IMG/VR virus record: IMGVR_UViG_3300027759_000045
Span: 186,001 to 250,000 of that record
Length of the DNA stretch: 64,000 nt
Strand: one strand, 5' to 3'
Below the pieces are notes generated by a model that searched no databases, had not been told where the DNA came from, and saw nothing but the letters and a program-made list of their open reading frames with translations. The translations under genes and the position numbers were made by a program. This document shows, one piece after another, positions 1 through 17,292 of the stretch; the stretch's first letter is position 1, and each line of letters starts with the position of its first letter.

Positions 1-2117
1 ATCTTTGTTGGCACATAGGTGGGACTGTTTTGACCAAATGATGCAGGTGCTGGTGGTTTGCTCATGCCACCTTTGGGTAATCCGGCGTTGGCCAAACGGT
101 TGATGGCTCCACCTAGTACATTGCCCAGTATGCCACCACCCCAGGTTGTGCCAGGGCCTGTGGGATTGGTGCTTTGACGTTTGTTCAGCATGTTACTGTT
201 GTTGACATTGGGACTGCGAGCACGTATATAGTCCACATCTACAGGCAGGTCGTAGGTAAAAGACTGCACCACACAGGGATGTTCGTTGAATTGGTATTCA
301 CCCAGTCCGGTTAGATACACCAATGGAGGTGGTGTGCCACGTTGAGGATCTTGACCATAGAACATTTTTGTCACTGATTTAAAAAAGTGTATCACTGCCA
401 ACAGATATTCAGCCTCTGTTGTGCTTTGTGCAGTAAATGGACAACTCAGTGTGACTGGTTCAACTGAACTGCTTTGATAGTAGTAGCCTTTGTAGTTGCT
501 GTGTGTTAGATCATAACTTGCATAGTTGGCCTTGTACGAAGTGCCAATTGTGGGTGTGTAAGGAAATATAATTCCTGTGCCTTTTAGTGGCTGTAATATT
601 CCAGGTTCTGGGGCATTGTACAAATAATCAGCACCTGGTGCTAGTCGTAACTTAACACGCCAATCACCGTTGTTGGGATTTCTGCGCTGGTTGGCAATGG
701 TGTTCTGTGCTCGTGCCTTGTCCAAGGTGCCTTGTTTTATGGCAGCATTGAGATTGGTACGCTCTTCTTCTTCTTCAGGATTGGCGGCAAAGTCTCCAGA
801 AGGTTGTATTGTGACTGGATCGTCGGCACCCACAGCCTCGGGATTGAATACATTTTCAGTAACCCCGGCAGTTCCAGTTGGATCAAAAATATTTTCTGCA
901 TTTGGGTCAACTGTGGGTTCAACTTCTATGGCTTCTGTGGCTAGTATTCGTCGATTCTCTGCTTGTTCTAGTTCCAGTGCGTCTGCTTCCTCATCTGTCA
1001 TTACAGGCACATCTGTGGGTTCAAACTCTGTTGCTTCTTGTTCTGCTAGTGCTTGTTCTGCTTCGAATCTTGCCTGTTCAAATGGATCTGAGTTGGGCTC
1101 AACGTTGGCAGGATCAAATACTGATTCTTCTCCGGCGTTGATTGTCTCTCCTGGATCAAAAACATTCTCACCAGGATCAACTGTGGGGTCAACTTCTATG
1201 GCTTCTGTGGACAAGACACGACGATTTTCAGCTTGTTGTGCATCAAGTGCATCAGCTTCCTCATCTGTTAGAAATGCCACATCTCCAGGATCAAATTCTC
1301 GTGGTTCTCCGTCGAGTTCAAGTCCTGCTTCAAATCTTGCCTGTTCAAATGGATCCGAGTTAGGATCAACATTGTTGGGATCAAATACTGATTCTTCTCC
1401 GGCGTTGAATGTATTGCCTGGATCAAACACATTTTCAACTGCGTCAGCAGTTTTACCTGGTGCGTCGCCTCTGAAATACGTTCCACCGGTTTCTTCATTG
1501 ATTGCAAACCCGGGCTGTAGATTGCCATCGTCGTCATATGCAGGAAATTGACTTGGGTCACTTGCAGGATTTAATTCAGCAGCACTTTTTGGTACTGCTG
1601 TGCTGGCTGGTAAAACATCTTTTGTGCTTTTGAAAATTGAACCAATTGAACTTGCCAAGGATAACGCAGCCAATGGATTGGCTGCCGCTGCCCCCAGTGC
1701 CGCTGCCCCCAGTGTGTTTAGTAATCCAGATGAATTGCTTAATAAACTGCCCGAGCTGGGCGCTGGCGTTGACACATTGTATGGCAGTTGTTTGGCACCA
1801 GGATCAACCAGTGGACTTACGCCGCCATTACGATTGCCAGCTGATGCAACCGAGTCAGGAACACCCAGGCCGGTAGCTGGTGGAGTTTTTCCAGAGGCCG
1901 AAGTCACTGCCGCAGTGGCATTGTTTGTGGCCAACTGTGTAGCTTTTACTGCTGTGGTGGCAGCTTCAACTGCCGCCAGTGCCGCAGGAGACGGTGTTCG
2001 GCCGGCTTTTTGTGCCGCAATCACTGTGTTTTGAGCCGCTGCCAACGTTTTGATTGCCACAGCATTTTCACGTTGTGCTTGTGCGGCTTGTGCGGTTAGT
2101 GATGGGGTGGTTGCCAT
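1..2117 (-). CDS. Baseplate/tail-tube-related protein with long acidic repeat N-terminal region (runs off window start)
   Basis: Absent from the ORF track because there is no stop in the window. Hand-translated from ATG at 2117 (MATTPSLTAQAAQ...); the segments I read are open. C-terminal part DWRVKLRLAPG...IIFPYTP...HSNY...FTAQ...LLAVIHFFKSVTKMFYG...GTPPP...HPCVV resembles T4 gp48/gp54-like tube-fold proteins. TAAATA box upstream on the minus strand (~2137-2142). Confidence 0.6.
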   Translation of the reverse strand, partial: MATTPSLTAQAAQAQRENAVAIKTLAAAQNTVIAAQKAGRTPSPAALAAVEAATTAVKATQLATNNATAAVTSASGKTPPATGLGVPDSVASAGNRNGGVSPLVDPGAKQLPYNVSTPAPSSGSLLSNSSGLLNTLGAAALGAAAANPLAALSLASSIGSIFKSTKDVLPASTAVPKSAAELNPASDPSQFPAYDDDGNLQPGFAINEETGGTYFRGDAPGKTADAVENVFDPGNTFNAGEESVFDPNNVDPNSDPFEQARFEAGLELDGEPREFDPGDVAFLTDEEADALDAQQAENRRVLSTEAIEVDPTVDPGENVFDPGETINAGEESVFDPANVEPNSDPFEQARFEAEQALAEQEATEFEPTDVPVMTDEEADALELEQAENRRILATEAIEVEPTVDPNAENIFDPTGTAGVTENVFNPEAVGADDPVTIQPSGDFAANPEEEEERTNLNAAIKQGTLDKARAQNTIANQRRNPNNGDWRVKLRLAPGADYLYNAPEPGILQPLKGTGIIFPYTPTIGTSYKANYASYDLTHSNYKGYYYQSSSVEPVTLSCPFTAQSTTEAEYLLAVIHFFKSVTKMFYGQDPQRGTPPPLVYLTGLGEYQFNEHPCVVQSFTYDLPVDVDYIRARSPNVNNSNMLNKRQSTNPTGPGTTWGGGILGNVLGGAINRLANAGLPKGGMSKPPAPASFGQNSPTYVPTK
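879..1436 (-). repeat. Two ~90-aa acidic tandem repeats in the 1..2117 ORF
   Basis: EN(V/I)FDP at 1419-1436, 1152-1169 and 879-896 (spacing 267 and 273 nt). Unit contains NAGEESVFDP..NSDPFEQARFEA..TDEEADAL..QAENRR..TEAIEV.PTVDP. Confidence 0.85.
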
Positions 2118-2175
2118 AATGATTTTCCTATACAGTATTTATTGCAGAAATAAACTGGCTATATAATGATAAAGG

Positions 2176-2203
2176 TTGACAATGCAGTAAAAAGTGTTAT
2201 AAT
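2176..2203 (+). promoter_or_regulatory. Sigma70-type promoter upstream of the gp55-like gene
   Basis: TTGACA (2176-2181), 16 nt spacer, TATAAT (2198-2203) with extended TG; immediately followed by a TAAATA box. Confidence 0.75.
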
Positions 2204-2229
2204 AAATACATTACAAGGAGACACTGCCT

Positions 2230-3222
2230 GTGGCAACATCTAAACGAACAGCATCCACACTGGATCCGTCGAAATCAATATCATCAACACCCACTGCACC
2301 AAAAGTAAACTATCTCAACAACAGAGACATTCTCAAAGAGATACACGCCAGTAAAAACACCTACTGCTACTACGCGGATCCCGCAGTAGACAGTCAATAC
2401 GACATTATTTTGCCCGGACTGGACAAAATTAACCAGCGCACCATTGCTGAAGCCCGACGCAATCGTGCTGACCGACTCAAACGTGAAGGCACCATTGTGG
2501 ACCCTGTGAAGATTCCCAATACAGACCTGGTGTTCCGTATCACCTGCTGGGATCATATCCCAATGGCCGAGAAAAAGATTCCCAAGTCTGCACAGAAGAA
2601 AAAACAGAAAATTGAAGATCTGCTGGAGTTTGAAGACGAGCCCATTGATGATTCCCTGGACGAACTGCTGGACGACGTGGTGCTGAACCCGGTGCGTCAG
2701 CGACTGAACTTTCCTCCATTTGAACATTGGCGATTAGATGAAAACAAGGAACGGTTCCGTGTGGGTCGTAGTCACTGGCGGGGTGATTTAGAAACTGGCT
2801 ACTTCAGTCGAGATCACGGCGACATGACACGTAAGTTGGCACACATGTTTATGAAGCTGTGCGAAAGATATGCTACCAGGAGTAATTGGCGTGGATACAC
2901 ATACAACGAAGAAATGCGAGGACAGGCCTTGCTACAACTCAGTCAGATCGGACTACAGTTCGATGAATCAAAATCGCAGAATCCTTTTGCGTATTACACT
3001 GCCGCTATTACTAACAGCTTTACTCGCATCCTTAATTTAGAAAAGAAAAGTCAGAACATCCGTGATGACATCTTGGAGATCAACGGACTCAGTCCGTCAT
3101 GGACCAGACAAAATGCCGGAAAGGCCAGCATGGCCGCATTAAGTGGACCTGTTACCATTACCACTTACATTGTGGATAAGCCGGTAGAAGCAGTTGAATC
3201 GGATTCGGTTAACCCTGTGTAA
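2230..3222 (+). CDS. gp55: T4 gp55-like late-transcription sigma factor
   Basis: VNYLNN N-terminal motif and ...NWRGYTYNEEM...QFDESKSQNPFAYYT...NSFTRILNLEKK match gp55 motifs. GGAG SD before GTG start. Confidence 0.85.
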   Translation: MATSKRTASTLDPSKSISSTPTAPKVNYLNNRDILKEIHASKNTYCYYADPAVDSQYDIILPGLDKINQRTIAEARRNRADRLKREGTIVDPVKIPNTDLVFRITCWDHIPMAEKKIPKSAQKKKQKIEDLLEFEDEPIDDSLDELLDDVVLNPVRQRLNFPPFEHWRLDENKERFRVGRSHWRGDLETGYFSRDHGDMTRKLAHMFMKLCERYATRSNWRGYTYNEEMRGQALLQLSQIGLQFDESKSQNPFAYYTAAITNSFTRILNLEKKSQNIRDDILEINGLSPSWTRQNAGKASMAALSGPVTITTYIVDKPVEAVESDSVNPV

Positions 3223-11057: not shown

Positions 11058-11489
11058 TTATAGTGGTCCTAAAATTTCAAAACCTTCAAGGTCTTGTTTG
11101 TACAGATGTGCCTGATCCAAGTACAAGTACTCAAATCCACGGTCTCTGTAGATTGCACACTCTGTTTGTAAACTTGAGATACCCAGACGTAGTCGAGGTG
11201 TACGGTAGTTCCAAGCAAACTGTGCGGCTAATAAATTTCGATCATCGTAGCGTTTCATCATGGAAAACGCCACCAGTTCACCCGCATCCCTGTAGCCAAT
11301 AAGATCCATGCCGGGCTCTGTAAACTGGCTATCAAACAGTGGCATTACACTGCCAAAGTGTTTGTAGATACAATAGGTTCTGTAGATGTCTTGCAGTTCA
11401 GCAATGTCGGGGTCGGTGATGTAGTACCAGTCCACTCTAGGCTGGTATGTTGTTTTTTTCAAGTTGATTCTAGCAAACTGATAAGTCAT
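11058..11489 (-). CDS. ATE1/Bpt-like aminoacyl-tRNA-protein transferase C-terminal (GNAT) domain
   Basis: YRDAGELVAFS...FAWNY...LRLGISSLQTECAIYRDRGFEYLYLD...YK..L.GFE parallels the ATE_C pattern (LVAV...SLG..S.L.EI......YLYLG...YK). Confidence 0.65.
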   Translation of the reverse strand: MTYQFARINLKKTTYQPRVDWYYITDPDIAELQDIYRTYCIYKHFGSVMPLFDSQFTEPGMDLIGYRDAGELVAFSMMKRYDDRNLLAAQFAWNYRTPRLRLGISSLQTECAIYRDRGFEYLYLDQAHLYKQDLEGFEILGPL

Positions 11490-11992
11490 AGTCTAGGATC
11501 TTTCCTATGTTGGAACAGTGCTGTGAGATAATGGTTGGGCCATGAGTCATAAAATCCTTTTGCAGCCATTTGTGTTGCTTTGGTGTTGAGATCACTTAGG
11601 CTTTGTACCAGGGCCAGTGCGTATGTGCCTTGATTCATGCAGATACCATTGACCATTTCTACATCAGCCGGATGATCTTCTAGCACCAATATATCTGCAT
11701 CTAATAGAAATTCTTGATTGGCCTGGTCTAAACTAGAAGCAAACAGCTCGTGTGGCCATTCTGTAGGATCGTACGCATAGATAATCACTTCTCGATTGCC
11801 CATGCCGTACCTGGCTCTGTTCTTGAGATCAAAGTATGGGTCTGATCCAACGAACACTTCATAACTGCGTTTCAAACGTGCTGATCGTGCATAAGGACAG
11901 GGCGGAAATCCGCCCAACGCAGGATGCGGAACTTCTACAAAGTTCTGAATCCACTGTTCGATATCGTGTTTGACTTGATCTATGTTCAGCAT
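11486..11992 (-). CDS. DUF1415-like protein
   Basis: WIQNFVE....LGGFPPCPYA and later DHP motif typical of DUF1415. Confidence 0.6.
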   Translation of the reverse strand: MLNIDQVKHDIEQWIQNFVEVPHPALGGFPPCPYARSARLKRSYEVFVGSDPYFDLKNRARYGMGNREVIIYAYDPTEWPHELFASSLDQANQEFLLDADILVLEDHPADVEMVNGICMNQGTYALALVQSLSDLNTKATQMAAKGFYDSWPNHYLTALFQHRKDPRL

Positions 11993-11998
11993 GATGTG

Positions 11999-12229
11999 TT
12001 AGAAAAACGGCAGGCCTGATTTTTTAGTGGTCTCTAAGTTGTCTTTGATAATTTCAGAAACAGCATTGCGTTCATCAACACTGAGATTCAGTGCTGCCTC
12101 GTAGGACAGGCCGCCTCGCATGTACCAGACCATTTTTAGTGCTTCGGATTTGATTGATTTTGCCTCTTTGTCCATTTGTTCCACCCAGTTGGAAATTTGG
12201 TCAGAGTCCAGTACTAGGAGGCGTCCGCG
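11999..12229 (-). CDS. gp51-like baseplate/tail assembly chaperone segment, probably the -1 frameshift extension of 12214..13050
   Basis: WYMRGGLSYEAALNLSVDER resembles gp51/G-T type chaperone C-terminal parts. The frame overlaps the upstream stop at a slippery site. An independent start at MDKEAK is also possible. Confidence 0.6.
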   Translation of the reverse strand, partial: RGRLLVLDSDQISNWVEQMDKEAKSIKSEALKMVWYMRGGLSYEAALNLSVDERNAVSEIIKDNLETTKKSGLPFF

Positions 12230-13050
12230 AAAAAACTTGTCATGTCTAGTGTAATGGCCTGCAGGTAATCTCGTGTGCATTCGCCACACACAATTTTCAA
12301 TGGTTGTATTTCTGCACTTAATTTTGTTTCAATAATGTGATCTCTGATTTTACTAAACAGTCTACGATCACAATTCTTCAACATGTCTTCGATGTATTCA
12401 GGTTCGCTTACCAATGCACCGGGAGTTTTCACTGCGGCAATGCTTTGTGCCAACGCACTCACAGTGATTTCAGTAAGTTTCATCAATGCCGCACTGAGTG
12501 CAGACATGCGTTGCTCTTCGGGCATTTCAGTGCCGGGCAACACTTGTAGTATTTTTTGTTCTTCAAACTGACGTTGATTGTTTTCATTGAGATTTTGATA
12601 GGACATTGGTTTGAAATATATTTCAAGATCGCCTTCGGTTACAGGTTTTGAATAGTCAGGTGCTCGCATGTTTTCCAGCATGTTGCGCAGATCAATACCG
12701 TAGTCTGCTTCATTTTTGCAGTGTGGACAAGTGGTGGAAATTTCCATAGTAGTCCCGTAACTGGCCATGCGTATTGCAACCAAAATAGTGTCAACATCCG
12801 TGGCAGGCATGCCCCAGGGATCCTTGATCGCAGGAACACAACTTTTGATAACATTGACCACAGCGTTGCCGTTGAACAAGGCATCAGGAGTCTTGTATGC
12901 AATTTCATCAATGGCTGTCATTGGATAAACTGGAAGTTCTTGGTTGGCTGGCATCACAATTGCGCCATCTGCATAGTATTTTCCTCCGCTGGGCAATTTA
13001 ACATACACAGCCGGCTGTCTAAAATATTGTGTTAATGGGTTATTTGACAT
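12214..13050 (-). CDS. T4 gp26-like baseplate hub assembly chaperone
   Basis: NPL..YFRQP..YVKLPSGG, PMTAIDE, D.DTILVAIRMAS.G, CPHC and CGEC zinc motifs, terminal SFF. Confidence 0.75.
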   Translation of the reverse strand: MSNNPLTQYFRQPAVYVKLPSGGKYYADGAIVMPANQELPVYPMTAIDEIAYKTPDALFNGNAVVNVIKSCVPAIKDPWGMPATDVDTILVAIRMASYGTTMEISTTCPHCKNEADYGIDLRNMLENMRAPDYSKPVTEGDLEIYFKPMSYQNLNENNQRQFEEQKILQVLPGTEMPEEQRMSALSAALMKLTEITVSALAQSIAAVKTPGALVSEPEYIEDMLKNCDRRLFSKIRDHIIETKLSAEIQPLKIVCGECTRDYLQAITLDMTSFFADAS

Positions 13051-13075: not shown

Positions 13076-15445
13076 ATGGCAACTATGTACACCCCTGAAG
13101 AAAAAGCAGAAATCGAAGCGCGAGCGGCAGATGAAATAAAACGTCTTGGCGCTGTCAGCAATGAAACTAAAATGGCCATGATGGACATGTCTGTTGGTAT
13201 CAAAGGGTTCACTGCTAGTCTAACCAAAGGATTCGGGCAACTGGGGTCTTCTGCGTTAGGTTTGACCAAGCAACTGGCCGGTGGCGAAACTGGCTTATCT
13301 GTATTCAATGATTCAATTGGTGGCGTAACAAATATGTTAGGCGATCTAGCAGGGTTAATTCCTTATGTGGGCGGCGCACTTAAAACAATGATCAAAGGCG
13401 CAGGCGAGTATACACAGGCAGTAAACAAGCAAGCAGATTTACTGAACAAAAATTATCAAGAAATGTCCAAACTTGGTGCCACAGCATCCGACGGCGTTCA
13501 AGGGGTTTATGACAATCTAAAACGCATGAACTACGGCACCGACGAACTGGACAAGTTTGTGAGTATTGTTAGAGAAAACTCAACAACGTTGGCGCATTTT
13601 AGTGGCACAGTCAGTCAAGGACTTGGAGAAATGGCTGCAGTGTCGCAGTCCTTAAAAACCAGCGGCATGAGCCGAGAGTTTGAACTCATGGGCATAAGTG
13701 TTGATGAAATGAACAAAGGCATTGCTGGTTTTTCAAAGATGCAAGCGTTGACAGGATCACGACAAAAACTATCCTCAGAACAGCAGGCCGAGGCAGCTGC
13801 CAAATATATTAAAGAAACAGACTTACTGGCAAAAATGACTGGCCAGAGTAGAGAAAAACAACAGGCGCTGGAAGAAAGCGCCATGGCAGAAGAACGCTTT
13901 GCCGGCTACAAGTCAGAATTGGCAGAACGAGCTAAACTAGGCGATGAAGCGGCGGCAGAACAACTGAAGCAGGTTGAAAGATCACAGAAAATGCTGGCAG
14001 ATGCTTCGCCCGAAACACGCAAAGGGTTCTTAAACATTCTGTCGGGCACAATGGATACTCCTGAAGCACAGAAGTTATTGTTAACTATGCCAGAGGCAGC
14101 AGCAGTAGCAGGTAAAAAGATGTTCGATGCCGGTGAATTGCAGGACGCAATGTTACGGGATCTAACAGCTGGCCAAAAGAATGCTCAACAAATGGCACAA
14201 ATGGGCATCAACGATTCGAGCTATATCAAGTATACCGAGCAAATGAAGTTAAAGGCGCAGTTTGAATCCGGTACACTGGCAGAACGCGAAGCACAGGCTC
14301 TTAAAGAACAAACAATCACAGATCAAAATACCAAAGATATAGTTGATACCAACATTAAAAACCGTGCATCACGCGACAGTTTGCAAGATTTACTCAATGC
14401 CGGGATTGGTCCAGTTTCTACTGCCATGAAGGGAGCAGCATCTGCTACCGAAAGTGTTATCACGGGCTTTGAAAAATTAGCGGCATCTATGGGCGTTCCG
14501 ACTAAAAAACGCGATGCGGCACCAGCGGCAGGTGGAGCAGGAGGTGGAGCCTCTGCGGCAGCCCCAGCGGCAGCTAAGCCAGCGGCAGGTGGAGCAGGAG
14601 GTGGAGCCTCTGCGGCAGCCCCAGCGGCAGCTAAGCCAGCGGCAGGTGGAGCAGGAGGTGGAGCAGGAGGTGGAGCCTCTGCGGCAGCCCCAGCGGCAGC
14701 TAAGCCAGCGGCAGCTAAGCCAGCGGCGGGTGGTGGAGCAGGAGGTGGAGCAGGAGGAGCCGGAGGAGCACCAGCAAAACCCAGCCCTCGACCACCAGAA
14801 GGATCCGGAGCATCAGAATCTGGCTCTGAAAAAGTTGATTTAACAAAAATATTAAAATTTACTGCTAGATCTGGCAGCCAACAAAGTTTTGAAGGACTAA
14901 CCGACACATTTAAAAATTCTGTTATCTCTGCCGCAACTGAGTATAGTAAATTAACCGGCGGTGTGTTGCAGATTAACAGTGCTAAACGAGATCCAGCAGA
15001 CCAGCAAAGAATCTGGGATGAATCAGTAGCAGCCGGCAGAACGGGTGTAACTGCCAGTGGTATGCCTATAGGCAAACCAGGCCGTAGTCTACACGAAAAA
15101 GGCGAAGCAGTTGATATTCAAAATTACAACGATCCAATAGCTGTGACAGCCATGAACAAATATGGATTGACACAAAAAGTGCCCAAAGATCCTGTGCATT
15201 TCCAGGCTGCAGACGGCGGCATAGTTCCTCCGTTGCCAGGGGGAGCAAATGTACTGGCAGGTGAAGCCGGCCAGTCCGAAGCAGTGGTTCCATTGCCGGA
15301 TGGCAAGACAATACCTGTGCAAATGGTGGGCAATGAAGAACAAATGAGCATGATGTCTGCACAGCTGGATAGACTAGACCAAATGGTACGCATAATGCAA
15401 ACTCAAGTGGGTGTGTCAGAGCAATTATTGAAGTATGCACAGTGA
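13076..15445 (+). CDS. Tape-measure/baseplate-hub-like protein with C-terminal M15 (VanY-like) peptidoglycan peptidase
   Basis: ~480 aa Ala/Gln/Glu/Met-rich helical region, Ala/Gly/Pro linker, then INSAKR...Q..IW...SLHEKGEAVDI...DPVHF, then GEAG.SEAVVPL. Confidence 0.7.
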   Translation: MATMYTPEEKAEIEARAADEIKRLGAVSNETKMAMMDMSVGIKGFTASLTKGFGQLGSSALGLTKQLAGGETGLSVFNDSIGGVTNMLGDLAGLIPYVGGALKTMIKGAGEYTQAVNKQADLLNKNYQEMSKLGATASDGVQGVYDNLKRMNYGTDELDKFVSIVRENSTTLAHFSGTVSQGLGEMAAVSQSLKTSGMSREFELMGISVDEMNKGIAGFSKMQALTGSRQKLSSEQQAEAAAKYIKETDLLAKMTGQSREKQQALEESAMAEERFAGYKSELAERAKLGDEAAAEQLKQVERSQKMLADASPETRKGFLNILSGTMDTPEAQKLLLTMPEAAAVAGKKMFDAGELQDAMLRDLTAGQKNAQQMAQMGINDSSYIKYTEQMKLKAQFESGTLAEREAQALKEQTITDQNTKDIVDTNIKNRASRDSLQDLLNAGIGPVSTAMKGAASATESVITGFEKLAASMGVPTKKRDAAPAAGGAGGGASAAAPAAAKPAAGGAGGGASAAAPAAAKPAAGGAGGGAGGGASAAAPAAAKPAAAKPAAGGGAGGGAGGAGGAPAKPSPRPPEGSGASESGSEKVDLTKILKFTARSGSQQSFEGLTDTFKNSVISAATEYSKLTGGVLQINSAKRDPADQQRIWDESVAAGRTGVTASGMPIGKPGRSLHEKGEAVDIQNYNDPIAVTAMNKYGLTQKVPKDPVHFQAADGGIVPPLPGGANVLAGEAGQSEAVVPLPDGKTIPVQMVGNEEQMSMMSAQLDRLDQMVRIMQTQVGVSEQLLKYAQ
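14522..14760 (+). repeat. 57-bp tandem repeat (PAAGGAGGGASAAAPAAAK), ~3 copies plus partial units
   Basis: Identical units at 14522-14578 and 14579-14635; third unit has an internal 12-bp duplication, followed by 15-bp sub-repeats. Confidence 0.92.
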
Positions 15446-15483: not shown

Positions 15484-17292
15484 ATGGCTGAAACAGAAAA
15501 TGGTCGTAAGCGCGGTTGGCTCAAGTATTTCAAAGTGGCCGCAGGTGACGCCAACGGCCAACTGAGTCCTATTTCTGGGCGTTATCAAGCAGGCATACCC
15601 GGCTACGATCGCCAAACCGGCTACACTGGCAACACCGGAACCGGAAATGATTTTGCATTTCGTAACTATGCCAGCAGACTGCCTGAAGTGTACTCGGGCC
15701 ATCCCAATCGTGTTGAACGTTACAATCAGTATGAAAACATGGATCTTGATTCGGAAATCAATGCATGTCTAGATATCATTGCAGAGTTCAGCACACAGAA
15801 CAACGAAGACAACAACACACCGTTTGATATCACATTCAAAGACACTCCCACTGATCACGAAGTGGAAATTATTAAAAAACAACTGCAACAGTGGACCAAA
15901 CTGAACAAGCTGGACCAGCGCATGTTCAAACTGTTCCGCAACACCATCAAGTACGGTGACCAGGTGTTTGTGCGTGATCCAGAAACATTTGAAATGTACT
16001 GGGTTGACATGGTCAAGGTCAGCAGAGTCATTGTGAATGAATCAGAAGGCAAGCGTCCTGAACAGTACATCATCCGTGACATCAATCCCAACTTTCAAAA
16101 CCTAAGCATTGCACAAAAGACCACCAGCGACTACTATGTGAGTAGATCAACAGGTAGTACAGGACAAACAAACTATTCCAACAGCAACGGCGGCGCCGGA
16201 GGTGGCGGAGGTGGCACAGTGGGCAACAGCAGATTTGCACAGGCCATGAACGAAACTTGTATTGATGCCAAGCACGTGGTGCACATGAGTTTGAATGAAG
16301 GATTGGATTACTTTTGGCCATTTGGACAAAGTATCTTGGAGAACATCTTTAAAGTTTACAAGCAAAAAGAACTGCTGGAAGACTCTGTGCTGATCTATCG
16401 TGTGAGTCGTGCTCCAGAGCGTAGAGTGTTTAAAATTGATGTGGGTAATATGCCCAGCCACATGGCCATGGCCTTTGTGGAACGTGTTAAAAACGAAATG
16501 CACCAGCGCAGAATTCCCACAGTGAATGGTGGCGGACAAAATCTAATGGATGCCAGTTACAATCCACTCAGCATCAACGAAGATTACTTTTTCCCACAAA
16601 CAGCCGACGGACGTGGTTCCAGTGTAGACACCCTACCAGGCGGCACAGGACTGGGCGAAATTGATGATTTGAAGTATTTCAACAACAAAATGGCCCGTGG
16701 TCTGCGTGTGCCTAGTAGTTACTTGCCCACTGGTCCTGACGACTCAGACCGTGCAATGAACGACGGAAAAGTAGGCACAGCACTGATACAAGAGTACAGA
16801 TTCAATCAATATTGTGAACGTTTACAGCGTTTAATAATGCAGAAACTGGATGACGAATTCAAGATGTTCATGAAATGGCGTGGTTTTAACATTGACAACA
16901 GCATTTTTGATATTGTACTAGGCCCACCACAGAACTTTGCCAGTTACCGTCAAGCAGAAATGGACACCAGCAGAGTTGGTACATTCAGTACACTGGAGCA
17001 GTTGCCCTATATGAGCAAACGTTTCTTAATGGAACGTTACCTAGGGCTGAGTCAAGAAGAGATTGTGGAGAACGAAAAACTCTGGCGTGAAGAACGCGAT
17101 CAGCCTGAGTTAAGCACCACACAAGGACAAGATCTGCGTAGTATTGGTATTACTCCAGCAGGTATGGAAGCAGATATCAACACCGGTGAAGAACTGGCAG
17201 CTATGCCGCCTGCAGGTAGTCCTGATGTTCCTGGTGCCCCAGCTGGTCCTGGAACAGCACCCACAGCCGCTCCTCCGCCAGCGGCAGCATAA
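15484..17292 (+). CDS. gp20: Portal protein
   Basis: LEDSVLIYRVSRAPERRVFKIDVGNMP, EDYFFP..GRGSSVDTLPGG..LGEIDDLKYF..K..RGLRVP. Confidence 0.96.
   Translation: MAETENGRKRGWLKYFKVAAGDANGQLSPISGRYQAGIPGYDRQTGYTGNTGTGNDFAFRNYASRLPEVYSGHPNRVERYNQYENMDLDSEINACLDIIAEFSTQNNEDNNTPFDITFKDTPTDHEVEIIKKQLQQWTKLNKLDQRMFKLFRNTIKYGDQVFVRDPETFEMYWVDMVKVSRVIVNESEGKRPEQYIIRDINPNFQNLSIAQKTTSDYYVSRSTGSTGQTNYSNSNGGAGGGGGGTVGNSRFAQAMNETCIDAKHVVHMSLNEGLDYFWPFGQSILENIFKVYKQKELLEDSVLIYRVSRAPERRVFKIDVGNMPSHMAMAFVERVKNEMHQRRIPTVNGGGQNLMDASYNPLSINEDYFFPQTADGRGSSVDTLPGGTGLGEIDDLKYFNNKMARGLRVPSSYLPTGPDDSDRAMNDGKVGTALIQEYRFNQYCERLQRLIMQKLDDEFKMFMKWRGFNIDNSIFDIVLGPPQNFASYRQAEMDTSRVGTFSTLEQLPYMSKRFLMERYLGLSQEEIVENEKLWREERDQPELSTTQGQDLRSIGITPAGMEADINTGEELAAMPPAGSPDVPGAPAGPGTAPTAAPPPAAA

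Follow-up and report, generated by a model that had tools for sequence, protein, structure and literature searches.

A 347-kb freshwater phage very probably produces a short and a long form of its T4-type baseplate-hub assembly protein from one gene, by a programmed -1 ribosomal frameshift at a slippery heptamer that is kept in every complete homologous locus examined. One gene would thus do the work of the two genes of T4, gp26 and gp51. This conclusion is held with high confidence on comparative evidence, whereas the trans-frame protein itself is inferred from sequence, without protein, ribosome-profiling or reporter data. The window analyzed was a 64,000-nucleotide stretch of the 346,856-bp genome (IMG/VR record IMGVR_UViG_3300027759_000045, positions 186,001 to 250,000). 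We found no published description of this frameshift, including in the PA5oct paper, although most subscription journals lay outside the literature searched.

Table 1. Features of the PF12322 locus and its neighborhood (positions in the window)
Feature	Coordinates	Strand	Description
0-frame gene, short form	12214..13050	-	278 aa, gp26-type (PF12322 head only); stop TAG at 12216..12214
Slippery heptamer	12229..12235	-	T TTT TTC (X XXY YYZ), read AG[T TTT TTC] in the 0 frame, four codons before the stop
-1 frame extension	12002..12229	-	76 codons, from re-reading C12229 (RGRLLVLDSDQ...WYMRGG...ER...NLETTKKSGLPFF); with head codons 1-274 (13050..12229) gives an inferred long form of 350 aa; stop TAA at 12001..11999
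Candidate 5' arm of a long-range stimulatory stem	12216..12222	-	GCCUCCU, 6 nt after the heptamer; overlaps the 0-frame stop
Candidate 3' arm	12162..12166	-	GAGGC, codons Glu22-Ala23 of the extension; a second GAGGC at 12113..12117
Internal ATG of the extension	12173..12175	-	MDKEAK, alternative start
Divergent neighbor	13076..15445	+	789 aa, tape-measure-like virion protein (tape-measure role inferred) with a VanY/M15 peptidase domain (residues 604-709)
Portal gene (context)	15484..17292	+	T4 gp20-type, PF07230 E 3.5e-102

To verify the site, the minus strand was translated in both frames and the upstream gene was compared with profile libraries. The original prediction, that a gp26-like gene carries T TTT TTC in X XXY YYZ register close to its stop with an open -1 frame behind it, was correct. 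The upstream gene matched Pfam PF12322 (T4_baseplate; E 2.5e-17, 63.7 bits against a curated cut-off of 24.5) and phrog_150 ("baseplate hub"; E 3.9e-17), and a Foldseek search of BFVD hit "baseplate hub assembly" proteins at E 1.9e-15. Two Cys pairs and a C-terminal Phe-Phe motif (C108, C111, C255, C258, F273, and F274) were invariant in an alignment that included T4 gp26. This gene is the only PF12322 gene in the genome.

Next, we investigated whether the heptamer and the open -1 frame are conserved among relatives, a test set beforehand. In 110 of 110 complete homologous loci, the heptamer was in the same register and was followed by an open -1 extension; 109 loci have TTTTTTC and one has TTTTTTT. 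Collapsing at 80% identity left 63 lineages spanning 27-100% amino-acid identity, including Atu_ph07, Phosso, PA5oct, Serratia BF, XaC1, BF17, Xoo-sp13 and RaK2-like phages. Three further isolates, CBB, Salicola SCTP-2 and Vibrio 2.275.O, also have it. A nine-sequence alignment that included T4 yielded no usable conserved stretch for a search of related loci. The residue before Phe-Phe varies (S, N, T, H, D, A, Y), but its codon always ends in T, and the first Phe codon is always TTT. In the same genes, Phe is TTT only 63% of the time and NNY codons end in T 52% of the time, so about 0.33 is expected per independent lineage. This excludes chance. In contrast, T4 gp26 keeps the Phe-Phe motif but spells it GAG TTC TTT, which is not slippery, and has no extension.

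The -1 peptide (R-x-R-L-L...P-E-E-I...) is conserved from the first residue after the slip, whereas the 0-frame tail varies in length (1-11 aa) and sequence. Homology detected by tblastn to Atu_ph07 and Phosso starts at residue 1 of the extension, inside the overlap. The internal Met, which had been named as the alternative start, is not conserved: it is replaced by Leu, His or Gln in close and distant relatives (for example, in the homologous loci L011-L017 at 92% identity), and the PA5oct extension, which is unannotated, has no ATG at all.

These observations bear on the possibility that the downstream ORF is translated as a separate protein, from an internal ATG/GTG or by termination-reinitiation, with the T-run merely spelling a conserved Phe-Phe motif. 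This possibility draws on the presence of Phe-Phe even in T4 gp26 and on the annotation of the tail as a separate small gene in several phages. In half of the freshwater clade, a GGAGG lies about 8 nt before the Met of the L-K-M motif. In Atu_ph07, Phosso, Serratia BF and BF17, an ATG in the -1 frame overlaps the 0-frame stop (ATGA or TAATG), so coupled reinitiation could also express part of the tail in those phages. However, two separate proteins are very unlikely as the general explanation, because the wobble T and the TTT spelling are kept in all lineages, the peptide between the heptamer and any start codon is conserved in the -1 frame, no start codon is conserved, and the same head and tail occur elsewhere as one in-frame protein.

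Such natural fusions were found by a phmmer search of the extension against 1.84 billion representatives. Among the best 150, 19 proteins of 319-351 aa, from uncultured lineages, carry the domain in frame at the C-terminus, and all 8 that were tested carry PF12322. AlphaFold2 predicted one such fusion to fold as a single compact unit of head and tail (pLDDT 96.5, pTM 0.90). Lineages with in-frame long forms carry a separate short paralogue directly upstream. The fusions show only that the fused architecture is functional.

An assembly or sequencing error in the homopolymer, or a decaying gene, was also considered, because homopolymers are error-prone and in-frame versions exist in other lineages. 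This reading is extremely unlikely. The same frame relation appears in 110 independent assemblies and in 10 isolate genomes sequenced by different laboratories, the tail is under clear protein-level conservation, and an independent DNA contig matches the window with 0 differences over 11900-12592. DNA contigs and one contig from an RNA library span the T-run without any indel, although assembled contigs hide rare variants. Transcriptional slippage, in which RNA polymerase would add one U on the T6 run so that a fraction of mRNAs encode the fusion in frame, cannot be fully separated from ribosomal slippage by comparative data alone; selection for run length would also fix the wobble T. It is likewise very unlikely. 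Runs that slip efficiently in bacteria are usually 9 or more bases, whereas here the run is exactly six T followed by C in 109 of 110 loci, never longer, and a candidate helix a few bases downstream, supported in relatives, would fit a ribosomal stimulator. The RNA-library contig noted above likewise has no indel at the run.

To search for such a stimulator, the downstream RNA was folded and compared among relatives. In the freshwater clade, CGCCTCC is nearly invariant at synonymous sites. GAGGC lies at +69 or +90 in 50 of 56 clade lineages but occurs only 5 times in about 52 kb of head genes, and the Glu codon there is GAG in 51/62 cases against 5/40 at Glu-Ala in the head genes. The resulting candidate stem, GCCUC(C/U)U with (A/G)(G/A)GAGGC, starts 6 nt after the heptamer and reaches 7-10 bp in relatives. 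Its flanking pair covaries (C:G 13, U:A 10, other 5; 0 of 500 shuffles reach it). However, the groups used to count pairs were chosen by the presence of GAGGC, so the five core pairs are circular evidence, and the stem was found only by noticing the GCCUC/GAGGC pair. Much stronger helices with different arm sequences sit at the same place in Atu_ph07 (-33.9 kcal/mol, z -5.6) and Phosso (-36.0, z -4.4); across relatives, the stem starts 3-6 nt after the heptamer. In the window itself the stem is only 5-6 bp, and the region folds no better than shuffles (z +0.9 to +1.1). RNAalifold on 56 sequences found no consensus structure, and RaK2-like phages and PA5oct showed no significant structure.

We then asked how the two forms relate to T4 gp26 and gp51. 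T4 has two PF12322 genes, whereas this genome, Atu_ph07, PA5oct, Serratia BF and Xoo-sp13 have one each. The short form ends where gp26 ends, while T4 gp51 is a PF12322 head plus a C-terminal tail of roughly 48 aa. The -1 extension is probably homologous to that tail, although this rests on one moderate profile-profile score. In hhalign, the long-form family against the gp51 family gave a global Prob of 90.5 and E 1.6e-7, and tails only gave Prob 74.5, P 2.7e-5 and score 28.5, against at most 16.2 in 21 controls. The comparison worked only with a 14-member gp51 alignment; the fusion alignment against the single T4 gp51 sequence failed (Prob 7.9). BLASTP of T4 gp51 against two natural fusions was uninformative, a homology search with the gp51 tail returned only 3 T-even proteins, and phrog_634 ("hub assembly catalyst", the gp51 tail) hit neither the extension nor the genome. 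Pfam PF28602 is listed on T4-like gp51. The extension is longer than the T4 tail, with an extra helix carrying the W-Y-M-R-G-G motif, and T4 encodes its two forms as divergent paralogous genes with no frameshift.

The interpretation offered originally, a -1 frameshift fusing gp26-like and gp51-like chaperones with lambda G/G-T logic, was supported, with refinements. "gp26-like" is right. "gp51-like" is right in a more precise sense than stated: the downstream ORF is not a gp51 gene, and it is the inferred trans-frame product as a whole that is gp51-like. The phage had been called T4-like, but its genome is that of a jumbo phage with T4-type core genes, not of a T4-like phage in the narrow sense. 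The neighboring gene, described as tape-measure-like, is only inferred to be a tape measure. It matched Pfam VanY (E 3.6e-4) and NCBIfam vanY (E 1.4e-6), BLASTP against T4 gp29 found nothing significant, and its orthologues are virion proteins detected by mass spectrometry in PA5oct and CBB. T4 gp51 is required for hub assembly and absent from the finished virion; the PF12322 orthologues of these two phages are not among the virion proteins so listed, which is only indirect evidence for a similar role.

In lambda G/GT and the conserved -1 frameshift of tail assembly chaperone genes (Xu, Hendrix and Duda 2004, cited in PMC9024508), a heptamer near the end of the first ORF likewise yields a short and a long protein that share an N-terminus, next to a tape-measure gene; P2 E/E+E' is a further case. 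Here, the short/long logic holds by comparative inference, and is supported by the in-frame fusions, by the lineages with separate short and long paralogues, and by Bacillus phage SP-15. Only in SP-15 does the PF12322 gene occupy the classical slot between the tail tube and tape measure genes. In the window and in the RaK2-, PA5oct- and Phosso-type isolates examined, the gene is instead divergent from the tape-measure-like gene rather than upstream of it, and the order of portal, 789-aa-type protein and divergent PF12322 gene recurs in PA5oct, Phosso, Serratia BF, XaC1, BF17 and CBB. In Atu_ph07 and Xoo-sp13, neither that gene nor the portal gene lies beside it. Homology to lambda-type chaperones is not shown: no chaperone hit was found in Pfam, PHROG or NCBIfam, and Foldseek against the PDB (best E 0.5) and VIA-align (best Z 7.0) found no solved relative, only helical-hairpin matches at Z 7 or less. 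A complex prediction of head plus tail against residues 1-600 of the 789-aa neighbor gave neither support for nor evidence against binding to the tape measure. Compared with the IS3-family and dnaX-type bacterial -1 sites (PMC4066793, PMC5009743), the site shares an X XXY YYZ motif with a homogeneous pyrimidine run, a shifty UUY A-site codon and a candidate 3' structure a few bases downstream. However, no upstream Shine-Dalgarno-like stimulator is seen, and the candidate 3' element is a long-range stem closing 45-70 nt rather than a compact hairpin or pseudoknot.

Taken as a model, ribosomes that stay in frame would terminate four codons after the heptamer and make the head-only protein, whereas ribosomes that slip back one base would add a helical domain and make a protein with the architecture of T4 gp51, in a ratio fixed by slip efficiency. 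The analysis itself demonstrates the site, its register and conservation, the conservation of the -1 peptide, the existence of natural in-frame fusions and the single-fold model of one of them. That the slip happens on the ribosome, that a long-range stem stimulates it, and that both forms act as non-virion assembly chaperones for the hub or tape-measure complex, as lambda G and GT do and as expected by analogy with T4 gp51 (PMC3004832), are inferences.

About 100 isolate jumbo-phage genomes and many hundreds of environmental contigs hold this gene, and in every isolate record inspected (13) the downstream frame is either unannotated or called as an unrelated small gene. These include RaK2-like, PA5oct-like and Atu_ph07-like phages, some of which are phage-therapy candidates, and a joined CDS should be added. 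At the RNA level, the candidate stimulator is a long-range helix whose position is kept while its arm sequences and 3' partner site change.

A more far-reaching reading is possible but remains tentative, namely that the PF12322 proteins are the long-sought tail assembly chaperones of the T4 lineage. The head would coat the tape-measure/hub protein, and the gp51-type tail would recruit the next component, exactly as lambda G and GT do. The short/long pair would then be so essential that evolution has supplied it in three interchangeable ways: a -1 frameshift in the jumbo phages, tandem paralogues in some uncultured lineages, and divergent paralogues in T4. That would assign a mechanism to two T4 genes whose role has been unclear for about 50 years.

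The family offers a natural series in which frameshifting, gene duplication and gene fusion are alternative solutions to the same stoichiometry problem. The result would tie T4 gp26 and gp51 together as the short and long forms of one ancestral protein and place them, by logic and by synteny in SP-15, in the role that G and GT play in lambda, which makes their unresolved function directly testable.

To establish what the sequence contains at the end of the gp26-like gene, the minus strand of the window was translated and the reading frames were compared with protein family profiles. The 278-aa ORF ended with ATG ACA AGT TTT TTC GCG GAC GCC TCC TAG, where T TTT TTC was in the X XXY YYZ register of that ORF, four codons before the stop. 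The original prediction of a slippery heptamer at this position, followed by an open -1 frame, was thus correct. After a -1 slip, the C at the end of the heptamer would be read again and the frame remains open for 76 codons, so that the resulting long product would be 274 + 76 = 350 aa. The upstream ORF matched Pfam PF12322 'T4_baseplate' (E 2.5e-17) and phrog_150 'baseplate hub', whereas the extension matched no family in Pfam, PHROGs or NCBIfam. The divergent neighbor is a 789-aa protein with a VanY/M15 peptidase domain, and it is followed by a T4 gp20-type portal gene. Just upstream of the peptidase domain, a perfect 57-bp tandem repeat (2.5 copies, 100% identical), together with shorter 12-15-bp repeats, encodes an Ala/Gly/Pro-rich linker, and such a repeat could vary in copy number between strains. 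A 168-aa ORF starts 6 nt after the stop of the extension. It gave weak DUF6875 and phrog_28122 matches and, because no terminator lies between, it is probably co-transcribed with the hub-assembly gene. The virus record, of which the window covers bases 186001-250000, is 346,856 bp long with direct terminal repeats and was judged complete. The window recurs in lake and freshwater metagenomes. The coordinates of the features are collected in the table.

Coordinates of the features in the window and in related loci
Sequence	Position	Strand	Feature
Window	12214..13050	-	278-aa ORF, PF12322
Window	12235..12229	-	Heptamer T TTT TTC
Window	12229..12002	-	-1 frame extension, 76 codons
Window	12001..11999	-	TAA stop of the extension
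Window	12175..12173	-	ATG proposed as an independent start
Window	12222..12218	-	GCCUC, candidate 5' arm
Window	12166..12162	-	GAGGC, candidate 3' arm
Window	12117..12113	-	GAGGC, alternative candidate 3' arm
Window	11486-11992	-	168-aa ORF after the extension
Window	13076..15445	+	789-aa tape-measure-like protein
Window	14522-14664	+	57-bp tandem repeat in the 789-aa gene
L137 (Bacillus phage SP-15, NC_031245.1)	1162-2101		PF12322 gene and likely tail in the +1 frame
L114 (uncultured contig)	955-2909		Tandem short and long PF12322 paralogues
L115 (uncultured contig)	820-2744		Tandem short and long PF12322 paralogues
L001, L003, L004, L006 (Atu_ph07, Phosso, Serratia BF and Escherichia phage BF17)	3826-3831, 3832-3837, 3360-3366, 3333-3339		ATG in the -1 frame overlapping the 0-frame stop

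Next, we investigated whether the heptamer could have arisen by chance. The closest cultured relatives are jumbo myophages at 27-35% identity, namely Atu_ph07, Phosso, PA5oct and the RaK2-like group. On inspection, Atu_ph07 (CAT TTT TTC GCA TGA) and PA5oct (AGT TTT TTC AGA GAA TCC TAG) had the same heptamer in the same register and an open -1 frame of 72-76 codons. We then collected every retrievable locus, comprising 7 isolates, 105 IMG/VR loci (four contigs were retrieved twice) and the window. All 110 loci that are complete at the gene end had T TTT TTY in register (109 TTTTTTC, one TTTTTTT), and every extension that did not run off its contig was about 70-79 codons long, nearly all of them 76. 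When collapsed at 80% identity, these loci represent 63 lineages. CBB, Salicola phage SCTP-2 and Vibrio phage 2.275.O, which were retrieved later, also had the heptamer. The amino acid before Phe-Phe varied (Ser, Asn, Thr, His, Asp, Ala, Tyr), yet its codon always ended in T, and the first Phe codon was always TTT. In the same genes, Phe was TTT in 63% of cases and NNY codons ended in T in 52%, and about one lineage in three would therefore show this spelling by chance. T4 serves as a natural control, because its gp26 keeps the Phe-Phe motif (...EFFELL*) but spells it GAG TTC TTT and has no extension. Sequencing error is excluded by the number of independent assemblies and by an identical independent DNA contig. 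Transcriptional slippage on six T is unlikely. The one RNA-library contig that spans the site has no indel, although contigs hide rare variants.

To examine whether the -1 frame is read from the heptamer, the peptides encoded in both frames were compared. The -1 peptide was conserved from its first residue (R-x-R-L-L-x-x-x-P/S-E/D-E/Q-I ... W-Y-M-R-G-G ... E-R ... N-L-E-T-T-K-K-S-G-L-P-F-F). In contrast, the 0-frame peptide after the heptamer varied in both length (1-11 residues) and sequence. A tblastn search with the 76-aa extension hit Atu_ph07 and Phosso over 100% of its length, starting inside the overlap. The Met that was originally suggested as a possible independent start of the downstream ORF was replaced by Leu, His or Gln in relatives, including ones 92% identical, and the extension of PA5oct has no ATG and is unannotated. 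Separate translation of the tail is possible in Atu_ph07, Phosso, Serratia BF and Escherichia phage BF17, where an ATG in the -1 frame overlaps the 0-frame stop (ATGA or TAATG), so that the tail could also be expressed by translational coupling in these phages, in addition to frameshifting. However, separate translation does not explain the universal heptamer, the conserved peptide upstream of any start, or the start-less versions.

We also searched for proteins in which the same domain occurs in one continuous frame. For this purpose, the extension was used in a phmmer search against 1.84 billion cluster representatives, which found 214 proteins. Most of these are gene-caller fragments of 40-100 aa. 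Nineteen of the best 150 are 319-351 aa long with the domain at their C-terminus, and all eight that were scanned had PF12322 in front of it. Their junction reads ...L-D-x-S-x-x-F-R-x-K-L-I..., which is the trans-frame junction predicted here minus one Phe. AlphaFold2 modeling of one such fusion (P0148), run on a 131-row alignment, gave a mean pLDDT of 96.5 and a pTM of 0.90, and the tail helices (residues 239-314) were as confident as the head. In this model, head and tail therefore form one folded unit.

The relation to the T4 proteins was examined next. T4 gp51 (249 aa) is itself a PF12322 protein (residues 1-201, E 3.9e-52) with a roughly 48-aa C-terminal tail that phrog_634 calls 'hub assembly catalyst', whereas T4 gp26 (208 aa) is PF12322 only. 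T4 has two PF12322 genes, while the genome of the window, Atu_ph07, PA5oct, Serratia BF and Xoo-sp13 have one each. T4 gp51 was aligned with 13 other Straboviridae gp51 proteins, and this profile was compared with a profile of long forms, made of natural fusions plus trans-frame products joined in silico. The global comparison gave Prob 90.5 and E 1.6e-7, with the alignment running through the tails. The tails alone, in local mode, gave Prob 74.5, P 2.7e-5 and a score of 28.5 over 30 columns (R-G-G-x-S-Y..M.L-S..E-R..I..I-I-K against K..Y-S-L..I-M.M.P.E-R.I.L.L-I-E-K), whereas one reversed and 20 column-shuffled controls scored at most 16.2. The junction motifs also agree, as T4 has V-F-K-L-L-V-N-P-D-E-I and the jumbo phages have F-F-R-x-R-L-L-x-x-x-P-E-E-I. 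The protein database lists a further Pfam family, PF28602, beside PF12322 on T-even gp51 proteins (P0272-P0274). This family presumably covers the gp51 tail, and it is newer than the Pfam release with which the extension was scanned. From the profile comparisons and the junction motifs, we regard the extension as probably homologous to the gp51 tail, with the short product being gp26-type and the long product gp51-type.

In the two contigs retrieved for in-frame long forms (L114 and L115, uncultured, 31-38% G+C), a second, shorter PF12322 paralogue of 294-312 aa lies directly upstream in tandem. This paralogue has no tail and lacks the Cys pairs. The short paralogue of L115 still ends with TCT TTT TTC AAT GAC TAA, but its -1 frame stops after one codon, so this may be a relic slippery site. 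Three arrangements thus exist, namely one gene with a frameshift, tandem short and long genes, and the divergent gp26 and gp51 of T4. This is the best available argument that both products matter, and it parallels lambda G and GT. In Bacillus phage SP-15, the gene order is tail sheath, tail tube, PF12322 gene, small ORF and tape measure, which is the classical chaperone slot. There, the likely tail lies in the +1 frame behind the T-run of GAA TTT TTT CAC and is only weakly similar (tail-HMM hit E 0.12). In that +1 frame the bases read AAT TTT TTC, which is either a +1/-2 recoding event or a homopolymer error in the record.

The surroundings of the heptamer were then inspected for stimulatory signals. 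No Shine-Dalgarno-like element was seen upstream. Downstream, CGCCTCC(T) was nearly invariant, even at synonymous positions, beginning 5-6 nt after the heptamer. Its complement GAGGC occurred at +69 (23 lineages) or +90 (28 lineages; one has both) in 50 of 56 freshwater-clade lineages, and four more had it at +42 or +118-121. In contrast, GAGGC occurred only 5 times in about 52 kb of head genes (63 loci), which is about ten times rarer than random expectation. At the two Glu-Ala sites of the extension, the Glu codon was GAG in 51 of 62 cases, against 5 of 40 at Glu-Ala in the heads, where 35 of 40 were spelled GAA-GCN. This suggests a general avoidance of Shine-Dalgarno-like strings in these phages, which makes the two GAGGC sites in the tail stand out. 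The pair flanking the core covaried (C:G 13, U:A 10, other 5 in the +90 group), a level that 0 of 500 shuffles reached, and pooling both groups gave P 2.5e-7 in Fisher's exact test, uncorrected for shared ancestry. However, the groups were chosen by the presence of GAGGC, and RNAalifold found no consensus structure. Single-sequence folds recovered this candidate stem in the loci L040 and L080 (z about -2), but RaK2-like phages and PA5oct showed no significant fold. In the window itself, only 5-6 bp can form between GCCUC and either GAGGC, and the region folded no better than shuffles. In half of the clade, the GGAGG at +90 also lies about 8 nt before a Met, so a second role as an internal ribosome-binding site cannot be excluded. 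At the equivalent place, but with quite different arm sequences, single-sequence folds found very stable long-range helices in Atu_ph07 (-33.9 kcal/mol, z -5.6) and Phosso (-36.0 kcal/mol, z -4.4).

The mechanism proposed here is the familiar bacterial -1 frameshift, for which the high shiftiness of UUY codons, and of motifs in which X and Z are both purines or both pyrimidines, has been noted (PMC4066793). The reading put forward in the original prediction, in which short and long forms are made according to the chaperone logic of lambda G/GT, is supported by these comparisons. The site, its register, its conservation and that of the -1 peptide, and the occurrence of in-frame fusions were observed directly in sequences, whereas slipping on the ribosome, the trans-frame protein itself, stimulation by the downstream stem and a chaperone role are inferred. 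Membership in the lambda-type chaperone families is not supported, because no family hit was obtained, no solved structure resembled the model (Foldseek best E 0.5; VIA-align best Z 7.0 on helical hairpins), and in the window the gene is divergent from the tape-measure-like gene, not upstream of it. That the 789-aa neighbor is a tape measure is likewise inferred, from its position, its size and the virion location of its orthologues in PA5oct and CBB. It showed no similarity to T4 gp29, and one complex prediction gave no verdict.

None of the jumbo-phage papers that could be searched mentions a frameshift in this gene, and the inspected isolate records annotate two genes or leave the extension blank. 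What is new is not the mechanism, but a conserved, inferred chaperone-type -1 frameshift in a protein family where it had not been recognized. Its added value is that it links T4 gp26 and gp51, through a probable homology of the tails, as the short and long forms of one protein.
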